Shown here: one piece after another, positions 3,401-47,500 of the stretch
Layout of the letters: every line of letters begins with the position of its first letter
Position numbering within the stretch: the first letter of the stretch is position 1
From: Tubulanus polymorphus
Taxonomy: Eukaryota; Animalia; Nemertea
Reading direction: 5' to 3'
NCBI RefSeq assembly: GCF_964204645.1
Contig: NC_134035.1
Location: forward strand, 8,092,451-8,156,450
Length of the DNA stretch: 64,000 nt
Made by a program: the position numbers and the translations under genes
The notes under the pieces: model-generated
Told to the model about the DNA's origin: nothing
The model's database searches: none
Seen by the model: only the letters and a program-made list of their open reading frames with translations

Positions 3401-6400
3401 TGCCACTTCAAAGTTTGCTTTTGATTTAAGTTTCTAATCACCGAAAAAACACCGAGAACATCTTCTAACGATTAAACCGGAGATCACTTGTAGCCTGTCA
3501 ATATAGTTCCCTTTCAATTTCGAGTCAAATTTGACTCAAGAGTTAAGACATTGAAAATGATCTGATTTTAACTCTCAGAGTTAAATCACAACTGTAATGC
3601 ATGCCAGGATACTGCCAAAATCAGGGGCGGATCCAGGGGCATGTTGGGAACATGACGACCAATAAAAAGGGCATATCTTAATTTAGGGCGGAAAGGCGGA
3701 TAGCCAAATTGAGCGCCGCAAGCACAAAATGCAACTGAGGGGGTCCTCCCCGGAAATTCTACTATCATTTAAGAGCTTTCTGAGCATCTCTATTCAAGAA
3801 ATAAAGGTTATATATTTAGGAAAAATATTGTCCCGTATGTCGGGTGGAAGCAACGGCAAATTTTGATGCAGACAGAAAAAATAAAAAGGGCACCGTCTTA
3901 AACCGCCCCTGAAAATGGAGCCCTGCATACCAGACAAATGATTGTTGATGACGTTTATCTTTGCTTTTTTAGACTGGACAAGTTATCGGTCGCGTGAATC
4001 TAGTTTCGGGACACGTAAAAACCCAATTGATCGCGCACGATAAAGAGGTTTACGATATTGCATTTAGTCGAGCGGGCGGCGGTCGTGATATGTTCGCCAG
4101 TGTTGGTAAGTCTGAATATGTTTCCGTAGCAGTTCAAACATCAGCAGTTAGGCGTTTACGACAATTGTCCCCGTGATTATTGCCCTCAGCACATTTGCCC
4201 CCTCTCCCAAAAATCTTTATTAATCTGGTTCCTAAGTACTTAACTTCAGCAAATCAAAAACTTAATCAGTCCTGGAGTGATTATATTATCACTTACCAAA
4301 TCAAAATAAATGGAGTCCACTTATTAGTGCATTAGTTAATGTTGACTGATTTATTGGAATTAGTTAGTTTTAGTGTTACTATAGCCGATCAAAAACTTAA
4401 TGAATCAGTCCCAAAGTAATTAGCTACACTAAGCTTAGTTAATAAGTTAGTTTGCTTTGTTTGTCTAATTAATTAGAAATAAGTTTCTGTGTTACTATAA
4501 GATTTAATAGATTATAATGGATTTAATTCGAGGTAATTGTCCTGATAGGGTTTAGAAGATGAATGGATGATCAGATGAATAGATGATGATATGTTTCTCC
4601 TTGAATTTCTAACCACAGGCGCTGATGGATCCGTTCGTATGTTCGATCTCCGTCATTTAGAACATTCGACTATTATTTACGAAGATCATCACCATCATCC
4701 GTTGTTACGTCTGGCGTGGAATAAACAGGATCCGAATTATCTAGCAACGATGGCCATGGATGCGATGGAGGTTCGTTTACGATAGTATTACAGGGTGGGT
4801 CCTTAGGACCCCTTCATTCTTTAAAAAATCCTTCTCTAAATGGAAAATGCTTGAAAACTGAGCAAAATGCCTGAAATTTCTTAAAAGCGCTTTCAATTTT
4901 GAGAAATAGGCAATTACAAATTTTTGGCTCCATGGCAAGCAGACTCAACTGTTTGAAACAATAGAACTATATAAAGATATCAATGGTCAAATAGAATTAG
5001 ATTAGATTAAGATCTTGAGTTAACAAATTGAGTTTACTCGCAATCTCTTTCTTAATCAATCCTGCTTAATTCGTCAGTTGGTTTTCGCAAGACTCCAAGA
5101 ACGAACTTAGACTCGAGCAGGAAAAAAATCCTGGAGGCTATGAGGCATATTGACATCGAGTTACGATCAATATGTGCGATAATCCTCCGACATTTAGATT
5201 AATTATGTTTTACTCCTGTTAGATTTTGTGCGATTTCTCGTTTTAAGATCGAGGCGAGAAACTGACTACTCGGCAGAGTGGCAGGAAAAATTAAATATAC
5301 AGGAGTCACAGCAGCACGGCGATCTTGAGTGTCAATCGTTGTGTGCTTAACCCTCCTACAATTATAGATACAGAGTAGAGAACAAACTCGCTCAATTCAG
5401 ATCATTTAGAACTAATGATATTCATCGGGTTTATGAGTGAGAAATCTGAATTAATCGCTGCCGGCTACGAATAAACGCGTACTTCCAGTTCTGTCACAGT
5501 GTCACTACAAATATATTCGTAGCTGTTTACTTCCTATTCACAGGATGCTTCCTGGGTTCAGTTTCACAAAAAAATAAGAACGCCCAAAAATCTATTTAAG
5601 ACAAACTGAATAATGAAATCGGTTCGATTTGTCATCCTCGCTTGCCAGGGGTCCGGTATCACTCCCGCACTCGCTTCCACCAGCCCCCTGGCCTCACGAA
5701 GCGTGATTTCATTACTGGCGCTGTTGTGCATGACGTCATACATCGATTTGCGAAATATTTCCTTGTTCGGTTAAACGTTCGCTGATTGGTCCATTTAACG
5801 GGAAAACCAACAGAAGCCCAATGTCGTTTGTTACAAGCGCTGTGATTGGTACGACTGGATTCTGGTTGGCTAGTAATGACTCCAACGACTCGTGAGGTCA
5901 AGGGGTTCGGGGAACAGCTTTAGCGTAGTGGGTTTGAATCCCTTGACGGGTGAAGATGTGATTTGTGGGAGTTGATCCTTTTTGTAAGACAGCTAAAAGC
6001 CAGTCCGGGCCATTCAACGCACGTCTAAAATGAATGTTTTCTGGTTTCGTTTAGGTGATCATACTGGATGTACGAGTGCCGTGTACACCTGTAGCTAGAC
6101 TCAATAATCACCGAGCGTGTGTGAACGGTATCGCATGGGCTCCGCATTCGAGTTGCCACATATGTACGGCAGGTATGTAAGAACTGTCAATTATCGATTT
6201 AAGCTTTTGGTTTTCGAGTGATGGAAAATGCTAGTTAATGAATCCAAACTTGGGACGTATGATTCTTCGGATATGACAGGGTCCCAACGACTCCTTAATT
6301 CCTTACAGGGATGAAAATCTTCCGACCATAGACGGATTTCCGACCTTATCTAACATTTTCTTTATTCCTGAGAACAGTGTAAATCACCTCAATCGCTTTG

Positions 6401-17581: not shown

Positions 17582-20500
17582 ATGCAGTCAAACTACCCGG
17601 TCACGTATACAAACTCTGAAGGGATGAAATGGGCGATGCAACAAACTACGATTACATCTTTCAAAGCCGATAAAGCCCACAACCCGCACCCACCGTTTGC
17701 CGCTAAATATGGCCGAAAGATTCGTCCTACTTCAGGTTAGTCGATCAAGCTGTTCCTGTTGTCTTAGAAGATACTCAAAGTTGTGCCCCATTTTTATTTA
17801 AAAGTACTTCTTCATACAGGGTGGGATTTTGTTGAAAAACCATCTAAAATAGCTAATTTGGCATTGGCATTTAATTTCTTTGATGAAGACTGCGTCGAAA
17901 TTCGTCGGCAGGAAGACTTAAGACTCTGTTTCTGTTTCTGTTTCATGTTGTGTAGCTCCTGCAGCAGGTCGCTCGGAACCGTGGCATCAAGTTAACTATA
18001 ACGCTCCTCAACCAAGAAAACGCTGTCATATTTCATTAAACCATCAAAATCTTGAGTCTAAAGTCAGCAGGCACGCTCCATATGCCGGTATGTACTTTTG
18101 TTTTTTCCACAAGATGCACTTAATTGTGCTTTAATACCATCTGACATGTTTAATCCAAGATTCAGTTGCTCAAATATTGGTAAACCCGGTAAAAGTATTG
18201 GGCGTATGTTTATGTCAAATATGGTCATTCTTTTAGCATTTTGGACGAATATTTAGTCTACATGTTCATCACCACCCATCGTGTTATACACAGAGTGCTA
18301 GATGTAAAATTCATTTCTGAATTTGTCAGTTATTTCCGCTGGTAAACTTCGAAATCTATAAATATGTATATATTTTCAGCTCGTAAATACGACTCCGCTG
18401 TATTTACGTCGAACGTCGCGCGACCGATGTCTTCTCTACCCGATTATAATCCACTTCACGATCCACATTTACAAGATTATTACGAGAAAAGATTCGCGCG
18501 AGCGTTATTATCGGCGCAGCAGGTTAGTCAGTGTTTCATTGCATCATCCCTAGCATTTTAACAGGGTGGCCACTCATATGGAATTCAGGGAAATCAGGGA
18601 AAAATCAGGGAATTTGATTTTCACCTAAAAAGTCATGGAATAGTCAGAGAATTTTATGAAGAAGGTCAAAATCATGGAAAAGTCAGGGAAAATGGTTTTT
18701 ATGCACGTCAAAAATACATTCCTTTTCTAAAAATTCGAAATGAAATATACCGTAGTTGAGACAACTTTGGTCATGGAATTTTGGTAAATGTTCAAGGAAA
18801 AGTCATGGAAAAGCCAGGGAAAAACAATCTCAGATAAAAGTGGCTTCCCTGTTAAAGGTAACCGGTATTATATCCTATTCAGGGACGGATCTAGGAAAAT
18901 TGAAAGGGGGGTCAGGAATGAAGGAAAAGGCGTTCTTATGAAGAAGGCAACCAGTAGTCAATAAGTAGTTTCAATAGTTATAAGGTGCTTGTATGTATTT
19001 CAGAAGCAGACGCTTCGTAGACGGGCATCGTCAATTATATCAGCAGCAGGCGGTGCTGACGCCGGAAAGAAAGGCAAACAGAAAATTGCGTTGTACAAAG
19101 TCGCGGTGACCACCGGCGACCGAAAAGCTGCCGGAACTGACGCCCGGGTATTCATCCAGTTGAAAGGCACGAAAAATCGCATGCCGAAAATACGCCTGTT
19201 CAAAAAGACGACCGCCAGTAAAGACCCGCGCAAAGATCCGTTTAAATTCGCGCGTGGTACGACTCATATATTCAAAGTAAAAGCGAACGAACTAGGTGAA
19301 CTGAAATCATGTGTTATTGAGGTGAGTTAAGAGTAAAAATATGAATGTACATTATTTAGTGTACATTCACCCCCACACCACTCCTAGTAACGAGGAGTGG
19401 TGTGGTGTGAGTGGTCATAGCAAAAATTGGCCACTTCTGCCCTTGTACGTAATGCTTTAAATTGTGTACTGGGGGTTTGAAAATCAGCAAATATTTACAA
19501 ACATAATCTATGAGCGATCTTTTGCCTAACTGCTTTCCGTTGAAGAACAAGTCTGAACTTTAGCCGGATTGATGACTCCTGACTGCAGTTTAGATGTAGA
19601 GATATAGGCTTGGGTCAATTATAATATCAATTTGCAAGTGTCAAATATAATCGTAAATAGTTATCTAAAACTGCGCTGTGATGGTGTTACATTTTTCAGC
19701 ACGACGGCCTGGAGAAAAAGCACAGCTGGTTTCTAGAAAGCGTTGAAGTTGTTAACGTAACAACAGGCACGTCGTGGATGTTCCTTTGTCAACAGTGGTT
19801 GTCCTTACACGAGGCCGACTGCCAACTTTCTCGGGAACTTTTCGCTAAAAAGTCAATCAAAACAGGTTTGCATCCGTTGACACCATCAGGTTTTGGCCTT
19901 ATTGTAAATACAATAAATTTTCCATTTTGAATATAGTAAATAGTGGGTCGATCTTGATGAAACGTGGGTACAATGTTATTATGGGTTCTATTTGTGCAGT
20001 GCAATGAATGGGCTCAGTGCACCACCTAGCGGCAGAACTAGGCCTTAAAACCCCCGTTTTTCAGCGGCATGACCTTGAAGATGATCTCATAACTTAGGAA
20101 CGGGGTCGAAATTCATAATGTTGTCTCGACAAAATTTTGCTATTGGGCCTAGATACAACATAGGGCCTATCCAAAATGCAATAAGAACTAACGCATCAGA
20201 GTTTGAGTTTGTGCCCGACAACCATTGTCGCTTGTTTGTTCTGTTAAATGAAAGTATTTGGAAATTCGGCATGATTTTGTCTGTTTGACCGGGAAATTTT
20301 CATTCAATCTCCATTGATTGTAGAGTATGAAGTGACCGTCGTTACGGGCGATGGTATCGGAGCGGGCACCGACGCGAACGTCTTTTTATCGATTTTCGGT
20401 AAAAGCGGCGTCCTGTCGAAGGTTCATCTGAAAACGGCCGCGAGAAAACCTTTCCAGCGTAGTCAAAGCGATATATTCTCGTTGAAAGGAAACTGCCTCG

Positions 20501-44500: not shown

Positions 44501-47500
44501 TATGTAGATATTGCGCTATAGCAAGAAAATAAATTAATATTATTATCATTATTATTATTATGTTTGCCAAAGTCGAACATAGAGTCCTGGATCCAGTTCC
44601 ACAGTTGTGAGTTAGATTTTACTCTGAGTTAAAGTTATTTCATTTTCAATGTTTTAACTCAGAGTCAAATCTTAACTTACAACTGTGGAACCGGGCCCTG
44701 GGGACAGTTGCTCAAAGGTTGGTTAAAGATAACCGGCGGATGAATACTGTAGTATCAATGAACTTTTAAATGTCACCATGTCAACTATCCACTGGTTAAC
44801 TCGAACCAACTTTGAGACTCCTGATTAGGATAAGATTTATCGATGATATTTTTTTTAGTGGTGCCTTACGAGTGCACAGTATTCACCGGCGATGTAGCGA
44901 AGGCAGGAACAGACGGCGAAATTTTCATAAAAGTTTTCGGCGAAAACGGTTCAACGGACGATACAAAACTGGATAAATCCGGTGACAGATTCGAACGCGC
45001 TAAAGTCGATCATTTGAAGGTGAGACAAATGAATAATTCAGATTTCTTGAGTTATAACTAGAATCCATGAAACAAGGAAACAATAGATAGTTGAATATGA
45101 CAATTAGAGCTAAAAAGTTCCACTGACCGTAGATATTTAGCATTAGGTGATGTGTGAATGTGGCCAACGTCTATAGTGGAGCTGACTTACAAATATTCAA
45201 ATTTCAAATACAAAATTTTCTTTGGGTAATAGCTAAAAATCTTTTTACTTCTGTTCAGTTGGAATTAGAAGATGTCGGTGCTCTGAAGAAGCTGAGAGTG
45301 TGGCTGAATGAAAAGGGAAGCAGAAATGATTGGAATTTGGAAAAGGTAACTATTGTCAAAACTTGAAACACAGGATCCAGTTCTTCATTTGTGAGCTAAT
45401 ATCAATTAACTCATTGTAAATGAACTGATCTAACTTACAGCTGTGGAACTGGACCCTGGTCTAGGTACACTGCAAAAAGCCTATACATATTCATCCTCGC
45501 TTGCCAGGGGTTCGGTATCGCTCCCGAACTTGCTTCCACCAGCCCCCTGGTTTATGTATGTCGATTGGCTCGTATTCATATCAGTGCTGTTTATTTTCAC
45601 CTTTTGTAGATAATGTTGCGTAATATGAACACTGGAGATTTGACGACATTTGAATGTCATAATTGGTTGAGTAAAAATCTCGGTGATGGAAAACTGTCTC
45701 GTGATCTGCCGGCTATGGTCAGAGGAAAATCACAAGTTGCCAGTAGGTTTACGTAAACATTTCGAATAAAATATCAGCGTAACATTTCTTACTGATACAC
45801 GAAACAGTAGATGTTTTGAAATGTGGCTGCCTCCATGAATCAGCCTATGACATCATCAGATTGCTTCAGTAACAATTAGCTCAAATGCCAGGGGTCATGA
45901 AAGAAGCGTTCACGTTCGCGACCCTGTTTAAACTAATTCTTTCACCACCACGCATAGATGTTTAAGTGGGGCCTGTCGCCGAACAGCAATCCATGTGACT
46001 GTGGCCAACCCCAGACAATGCAACACCTCCTCGAGTGTCCGCTCCTAGAAGAACCCTGCTCTAGACGAGACCTGGCAGCCTACAACACCACCGCCAAGCT
46101 GTGTGTCCAGCAATGGAAGGGCTCCATTTAGATTTGTACCTGGACACGATAAATAAATAAATAAGCTCAAATGGAAATCATTCTAATGTCCCTAAGGCCA
46201 TCTAGCAATGTGATAGGGATTTTAATGGAGGTAGCCATCTTTTCGTTAAGGTTCCTTATTTAAATCATACAAATGTATTGTAAATATACTTCTCGAGGTC
46301 TTGTTTGCCAACAATTGCTGGAGACATGCCATATATTGCAACAAAAGATAATCAGGAGATTCACAAACTTCAATGAAAATTTCTTGATTTGTGTTTGGTA
46401 TAGTCACATTGAAAAACCACATGGCTGCTAGAATATGCTCGAGAAAAGAATTCATTCCTCCTCAAACATTTTTACGATATTTCTCATTTCAGAAACTTCG
46501 TATCGAGTGAACGTGAAGACGAGCGATGTATCGGGTGCCGGAACCGACGCGAACGTGTTCGTCGTTATCTTCGGAGCGAACGGCGATTCCGGAGAACTTC
46601 ACTTGAAAACATCGGAAACGTTTAAAGATCCGTTCGAAAACAATCAGCTGGACGTGTTCACGTTTAAAGATGTGCTGTCACTCGGGGAACTGGCTAAACT
46701 CAGAGTCTGGCACGATAACAAAGGTAACAGATATTATATTATATGTACATTGACAAATTAATGTTGCCTATTAACGCGCATCCTCCTTTTAAACCTCTTT
46801 CTTATGATATTTGAATGCTGTAACTGTGAATCAGGCATCTTTCCCTGGAGAGAAGTGACATTGGTATTATTACCTAAGCCTATATATCTGTTACTGTGTA
46901 TCAGTCATCTCTCCCTGGAGAGAAGTGGCATTTGTATTATTACCCCTAGTCTATATCTGTAACTGTGTATCAGTCATTTCTCCCTGGAGAGAAATGACAT
47001 TGGTATTATTACCCCTAGCCTATATCTGTAACTGTGTATCAGTCATTTCTCCCTGGAGAGAAATGACAATGGTATTATTCCCCCTAGCCTATATATCTGT
47101 TACTGTGTGACATTCATCTCTCCCTGGAGAGAAGTGACATTGGTATTATTACCTAAGCCTATATATCTGTTACTGTGTATCATTTATCTCTCCCTGGAGA
47201 GAAGTGACAGTATTATTACCCCTAGTCTATATCTGTAACTGTGTAGTATCAGTAATCTCTCCCTGAGGATAGAGATGTAGCGCTAGGGCTGTTACTGAGT
47301 GCGCTGGAATTTTCTCTGGGGGGAGAAAAGTCGATATGAGTAAGTGTCGTAGGACCCTGTGGTACTGTGTGGGCATCAACCATTGACCTAGCATCCTACA
47401 CCTATCACACTGCTTCGTATTACGCACACATTGTAGTATAGCTTTCTGATATTCTGCATAATCCGTTATCTTATATAATGATGATTGTTGATTTGTAAAT

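Follow-up and report, generated by a model that had tools for sequence, protein, structure and literature searches.

An HDV-like ribozyme motif as the probable 5′ head of a bipartite LINE copy in an intron of a LOXHD1-like gene of Tubulanus polymorphus

The host intron and the ribozyme motif

Host exons were searched singly and unjoined. The + strand of the window (the whole stretch of 64,000 nucleotides that was analysed) holds at least 12 PLAT starts, at least 10 of them upstream of the intron considered here (a lower bound); with at least 12 such starts the host is consistent with a LOXHD1-like gene. For splicing, four read runs were used, all in the form of assembled contigs, among which neither RNA ends nor an empty-site allele were seen. 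A contig of run X4 carries the joints 45017>45257, 45343>45608/10, 45742>46493 and 46721>47501, all GT..AG on the + strand. The host gene is expressed, and at least some of its transcripts have 45743-46492 spliced out in the normal way. The parts of the gene that frame the ribozyme are:

45610-45742 (+), preceding host exon, in which a PLAT repeat ends; joints of the spliced contig at 45343>45608 (cut +2) and 45742>46493
45743-46492 (+), host intron, 750 nt, GT..AG, with the insertion described below inside it in sense orientation
46493-46721 (+), following host exon, in which the next PLAT repeat begins (46495-46719 matches Pfam PLAT at E=3.7e-13)

An earlier note, made from the letters of the window, had placed an HDV-like ribozyme in this intron, sense to the pre-mRNA, 148 nt downstream of an exon ending at 45742. 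Sense orientation and intronic placement were both borne out by the spliced RNA contig (GT..AG on +), which joins 45742 to 46493 and thereby also fixes the exon end and the distance. In the intron, 148 nt precede the predicted cut and 602 nt follow it up to the 3′ splice site. In each of the four runs, the summed word depth of the contigs rose into the thousands or tens of thousands at 44534-44884, 45470-45586 and 46874-47224, a sign that the neighbouring introns hold repeats of very high copy number.

Direct reading of the sequence gave the following elements, in agreement with each of those listed in the earlier note:

45891-45944 (+), HDV-like ribozyme motif, 54 nt, all elements in order and ungapped
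45890/45891 (+), predicted cut site, between these two positions
45891-45896 with 45920-45925 (+), P1, GGGGUC / GACCCU, 6 bp, including a G1·U wobble (G45891·U45925)
45897 (+), J1/2, a single A
45898-45905 with 45937-45944 (+), P2, UGAAAGAA / UUCUUUCA, perfect 8 bp
45906-45908 with 45917-45919 (+), P3, GCG / CGC
45909-45916 (+), L3, UUCACGUU, 8 nt
45926 (+), J1/4, one G after P1′
45927-45932 (+), P4 remnant, UUUAAA, six A/U bases at the place of P4
45933-45936 (+), J4/2, CUAA, with C45933 at the catalytic position

The elements follow one another in the nested double-pseudoknot order P1-J1/2-P2-P3-L3-P3′-P1′-J1/4-(P4)-J4/2-P2′. Both bases required for P1.1 are present (C45911 in L3 and G45926 in J1/4), as is the catalytic C45933, and the L3 has one U more than that of its relatives. 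G1 closes P1 through a G·U wobble, as it does in two of the relatives introduced below (L070 and L071). The motif is a real HDV-like ribozyme fold, an assignment upheld by the topology, the G1·U pair, the catalytic C and the covarying helices of the relatives; catalytic self-cleavage itself is predicted.

The nested minimum-free-energy fold of the motif gave z = 0.56, a value that carries no information in the case of a pseudoknot. In that fold the G-run of P1 pairs with CCACC downstream. A CCAC(C/A)-type motif stands right after P2′ in every family member (window 45945-45951), and it might act as an alternative-pairing or leader element.

The retroposon insertion that holds the ribozyme

The ribozyme is the first feature of a retroposed unit of 273-276 nt that combines a LINE head with a LINE tail. 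Around the motif, the unit and its borders are made up as follows:

45878-45887 (+), 5′ target-site duplication, AGCTCAAATG, a perfect 10-bp repeat with the identical 10-mer at 46164-46173
45888-45890 (+), CCA, three additional nucleotides that separate the 5′ repeat from G1, not conserved upstream of the relatives' ribozymes
45945-45957 (+), LINE 5′UTR remnant beginning CCACCAC, 13 nt, bounded downstream by the internal-deletion junction, which lies at the ATG or close to it; the CCAC-type motif occurs in all relatives
45958-46131 (+), 57-codon open frame, ATG plus the last LINE ORF codons, with a CxC..H..C knuckle and the stop TAG at 46129-46131
46132-46163 (+), 18-nt 3′UTR and (TAAA)n tail (tail 46150-46163); the copy on contig C5 has the same tail
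46164-46173 (+), 3′ target-site duplication, AGCTCAAATG, directly after the tail

G1 thus lies 3 nt in from the 5′ duplication repeat, and the CCA at 45888-45890 probably arose at the 5′ junction, either by untemplated addition or through microhomology. Over its 204 nt, the segment 45957-46160 matches the 3′ end of the C5 copy (L002/L038) at 97.5% identity; the C5 copy is a 2.15 kb, 5′-truncated element on contig C5 with an RVT_1 reverse transcriptase (RT) and a 13-bp target-site duplication of its own. The 57-codon frame gave a 97% tblastn-type match to residues 408-465 of the RT ORF, and a Pfam search of the frame at 45958-46131 returned no domain. The internal deletion is joined at what is an internal Met codon in the LINE, and the ATG is in phase with the zinc-knuckle C-terminus.

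A second copy in the same assembly (L005, contig C19) is older; it has a ribozyme-like head and the same LINE 3′ region, has lost P2′ and carries a different internal deletion. Another intact ribozyme was not found in the assembly by searches with the P3-L3 pattern, the reverse transcriptase and covariance models, and neither was an amplified non-autonomous family: the window structure is single-copy, and L005 is a different deletion derivative. A full-length copy of the exact LINE family was likewise not found in the assembly, where the best remaining reverse-transcriptase match has 32% identity, so that in this genome the evidence tying head to LINE comes from the duplication, from L005 and from relatives in other genomes.

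The preferred reading, at a probability of about 0.8, is that the ribozyme is the 5′ head of a bipartite (internally deleted) non-LTR copy that was retroposed in sense orientation into an intron of the multi-PLAT, LOXHD1-like gene. Weighing against it are the three bases that part G1 from the duplication, a P1 of 6 bp, the additional U of L3, the shortened P4 and an Rfam score of 27.1 bits, under the threshold of 35. The earlier note had pointed to non-LTR elements as carriers of HDV-like ribozymes, and this connection was confirmed by finding the motif at the head of a duplication-bounded LINE copy. HDV-like ribozymes have been described at the 5′ ends of R1, R2, R4, RTE, Ingi/L1Tc and LOA elements, where they free the element RNA from co-transcripts (PMC3774820, PMC3185411, PMC5786205), and bipartite non-autonomous derivatives that retain head and tail only are known for RTE, Ingi, Vingi and R2 (PMC5786205; PMC3774820). 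By analogy, the window copy fits this published scheme of LINE heads and bipartite derivatives completely. With the LINE-head ribozymes (R2, R4, R1, RTE, LOA, L1Tc/Ingi) it shares a double pseudoknot that comes first in the RNA and cuts at its own 5′ edge, with an ORF start close behind (PMC3774820, PMC3185411, PMC5786205); it differs in a P4 of 6 nt, and its LINE may be RTE-like or Vingi-like. With bipartite LINEs and SIDEs (R2 SIDEs, NARTc, RIME, Bov-A and derivatives of Vingi-1_EE) it shares the retained ribozyme head, the RT-recognised 3′ end and the flanking duplication (PMC5786205; Eickbush 2012, as cited there), whereas the window copy is single and unamplified and has retained 57 codons in frame with the C-terminus of the LINE.

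Under this scheme the ribozyme in the RNA of the source element would cut just 5′ of G1, which would release the element RNA from the upstream co-transcript and set its 5′ end, while the whole catalytic fold would remain on the RNA and be copied into each new full-length insertion. The template RNA of the window copy would have begun at the cleavage site G1, a few bases being added at the junction; a 5′ boundary 3 nt from the predicted cut is what would be expected if the template began there. At the window locus the ribozyme is then most likely a passenger and, if active, would incidentally cleave the host pre-mRNA as well, 148 nt downstream of the start of the intron. Cleavage of host pre-mRNA in competition with splicing, as the earlier note suggested, is possible.

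Judged from its sequence, the insertion is young, given its 97.5% identity to another copy and its perfect duplication, and the intactness of the ribozyme is put down to the youth of the copy rather than to selection at the locus. The CPEB3-style framing of the intronic feature in the earlier note was not supported, the motif being the 5′ terminus of a young, duplication-bounded retroposon; it is not a host-evolved intronic ribozyme. A regulatory ribozyme selected by the host, which would tune LOXHD1-like mRNA through competition with splicing, could draw on the sense orientation, on the location in an intron that is spliced, 148 nt past its 5′ splice site, on the CPEB3-like core and on a report that the Cpeb3 ribozyme modulates its host mRNA (PMC10919898). 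It is nevertheless very improbable, since the ribozyme sits inside a retroposon with a perfect duplication and a near-identical sister copy, since normally spliced RNA is present, and since the cut is followed by only 602 nt of intron, against a downstream intron of 9931 nt (9.9 kb) for the Cpeb3 ribozyme, whose half-life is 2-3 min (PMC10919898). A selected host role is unlikely for so young an insertion.

Chance expectation, relatives and covariation

A custom descriptor for the HDV-like topology was scanned over the window and over 38.4 Mb of first-order Markov sequence of window composition. In the window it matched the ribozyme site and one weak, AT-rich site at 20108. The 38.4 Mb of simulated sequence gave 38 loose matches (about 1 per Mb of strand), 2 matches with a P2 of at least 8 bp and none with a P2 of at least 8 bp plus at least 4 G-C pairs in P1. 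At the stringency of the window motif the chance expectation is about 0.007 or fewer per window, and over the 268-Mb genome a few tens are possible; since a stringent motif may therefore occur by chance genome-wide, context is needed to decide. An Rfam scan of the window at gathering thresholds gave no match. At permissive settings the sole meaningful match was CPEB3_ribozyme (RF00622), at 27.1 bits against a gathering threshold of 35 bits (E=2e-5 locally, 0.005 genome-wide).

Genome-wide, a P3-L3 word search allowing 1 mismatch hit 51 places, with HDV-like context only at the window copy. RF00622 and an own covariance model (R1) applied to the whole genome found only the window copy and the decayed L005, with 59-150 candidates scored and limited sensitivity. 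A genome-wide HDV-like search of the kind that the earlier note had proposed thus recovered the window copy but no second intact one among the 59-150 candidates scored.

Relatives of the RT ORF, 45-58% identical, were found in amphioxus, teleost fishes, a psyllid and many other assemblies. Contigs were fetched for several RT matches and for N-terminal (APE) matches in metagenomes, and in full-length relatives a ribozyme stands 25-60 nt upstream of the start of the APE+RT ORF. The ribozymes in relatives are:

L070, 4675-4744, 25 nt before the ATG; near-duplication around an element of about 3.9 kb
L071, 4266-4346, 27 nt before the APE ORF; P1 of 6 bp
L072 (Diaphorina citri), 4161-4272, P3 GCC/GGC and a long L3
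L074, 5-111, a 24-nt hairpin-capable insert in the 5′ strand of P1
L075, 94-200, a 24-nt hairpin-capable insert in the 5′ strand of P1
L076, U at position 1
L081 (Aldrovandia affinis, a fish), P4 remnant of 6 nt as in the window copy; 5′ strand of P1 missing
L083, 3528-3609
L084, 2360-2444, ahead of an intact 998-residue ORF; truncated within P2

The insert of L074 and L075 interrupts GGGG...GUC, an odd place for an insertion in an HDV-like ribozyme. In the Diaphorina ribozyme L3 begins UCCUCG and its loop holds about 54 nt, while P1′ is followed by CUGGGCAAC; these words resemble the genomic HDV ribozyme rather than CPEB3. A ribozyme was not found at L069, L073, L078, L080, L082, L085 or the C5 copy, which are truncated, rearranged or too divergent. 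At L085:2200-2520 a tandem repeat with units of about 33 nt, and no recognisable ribozyme, precedes a 1007-residue LINE ORF.

For covariation, an alignment of 6 sequences (A3) was used; a MAFFT alignment (A2) was set aside, as L070 was misaligned in it. In A3, 93% of cells are paired. P2 is 100% paired and changed on both sides in 5/8 pairs, P1 has 2 compensatory pairs and P3 is invariant. Compensatory pairs number 7 in total, where shuffled controls gave 2.8 (1/500) and slid ones 0-3, and the catalytic C of J4/2 and the C of L3 are invariant columns. Conservation and covariation among genomic copies, on which the earlier note had let its assignment depend, were thus found: P1 and P2 covary and the catalytic C does not vary among the 6 aligned sequences. 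At the level of sequence, these comparisons establish that a real ribozyme family has been conserved at the 5′ ends of a compact clade of APE+RT LINEs.

A biologically meaningless chance match to the descriptor, for which the rate of loose matches in simulated sequence and the second, weak match at 20108 could be cited, is effectively refuted by the ribozymes at L070, L071 and L083 together with the covariation in A3. The low expectation at the motif's stringency, the position of the site at the exact 5′ edge of a duplication-bounded retroposon and the covarying homologues upstream of related LINE ORFs in several organisms all speak against it.

The same relatives bear on the size of the motif and on its activity. 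The earlier note had called the ribozyme unusually compact for an animal example. The claim was right as to size, but the 6-nt P4 remnant is, by comparison with the fish copy, a family trait, and P4-less HDV-like ribozymes have already been described from metagenomes and phages (PMC10879173). Those ribozymes (drz-Mtgn and the phage theta ribozymes) are alike in length, at about 50-55 nt, and in the short linker that replaces P4 (PMC10879173); they come from metagenomes or phages in a tRNA or unclear context, whereas the window ribozyme belongs to an animal genome and a LINE 5′ end.

Given the same LINE origin, the window copy might be a relic that is catalytically dead or very slow. Such a relic would agree with a 6-nt P4 remnant that cannot form a stable helix, with the 6-bp P1 and 8-nt L3, which are likewise suspect, with the alternative pairing of the P1 G-run in the minimum-free-energy fold and with the visibly damaged 5′ ends of many relatives. 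On the other side, every position of the core that does not vary within the family is kept by the window copy, the P1 of L071 is also 6 bp, a fish lineage with the same P4 remnant suggests that this form is carried by active elements, and P4-less ribozymes are known (PMC10879173). A dead copy is accordingly regarded as unlikely, and the preferred reading remains that of a LINE head with its predicted activity.

Resemblance to the CPEB3 ribozyme and significance

The gathering threshold of the RF00622 model, 35 bits, was exceeded by three of the LINE heads, all from ENA assemblies: L083 (50.0 bits), L070 (39.8 bits) and L084 (38.0 bits). Below it were L071 (31.4 bits), L074 (31.0 bits), L075 (30.5 bits) and the window copy (27.1 bits). 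L083 and the CPEB3 consensus agree along a run that spans P3, L3 and P1′ and extends into the base of P4, and also in UGCGAAU before P2′. The heads over the threshold share with CPEB3 the core, the P4 base (CAG...UG) and the P2-proximal pairs, of which the P4 base and the P2-proximal pairs are positions that catalysis would not be expected to fix.

The CPEB3 ribozyme is also intronic and sense-oriented. Its P3-L3-P3′ is identical to that of the window copy but for the one extra U in the window L3, and 13/13 positions of this stretch are identical in L070, L074, L075 and L083; further likenesses are the P2-proximal AGAA/UUCU and CCCUGU after P1. The window copy differs from it in having no P4 helix, in a J4/2 of CUAA (CGAA in CPEB3) and in its setting, a mobile element within an intron of a PLAT-repeat gene, whereas CPEB3 is a conserved mammalian host locus. 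The CPEB3 ribozyme has been reported only from mammals, and a 2021 study gave no known outgroup outside them (PMC8233481). The heads of L083, L070 and L084 are candidates for a non-mammalian outgroup or source of the CPEB3 ribozyme.

That the 5′ ribozyme of the compact LINEs is the missing non-mammalian relative, and that of CPEB3 an exapted LINE head, is put forward tentatively, at somewhat less than even odds. The R2 and HDV ribozymes share 21/27 core nucleotides, and convergence of the core is documented (PMC8256844). The link is held at this level because of such convergence, because the Diaphorina ribozyme has HDV-like core words and because the link may already be noted in the literature of 2009-2011.

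Heading a LINE is a known use of HDV-like ribozymes, to which the window copy adds. What had appeared to be a special intronic ribozyme becomes an ordinary retrotransposon head, and the locus shows, as captured in nature, how a host gene can begin to acquire an intronic self-cleaving RNA. A ribozyme family is defined and tied to a compact LINE clade of fishes, amphioxus, insects and marine invertebrates, and a P4-less, minimal HDV-like form is shown in animal mobile elements. For the origin of the CPEB3 ribozyme, described as confined to mammals in the literature covered, the family offers testable outgroups; if the proposed link is true, the intronic ribozyme of CPEB3 would have arisen from a LINE head like the window copy, freshly inserted on the sense strand of an intron.
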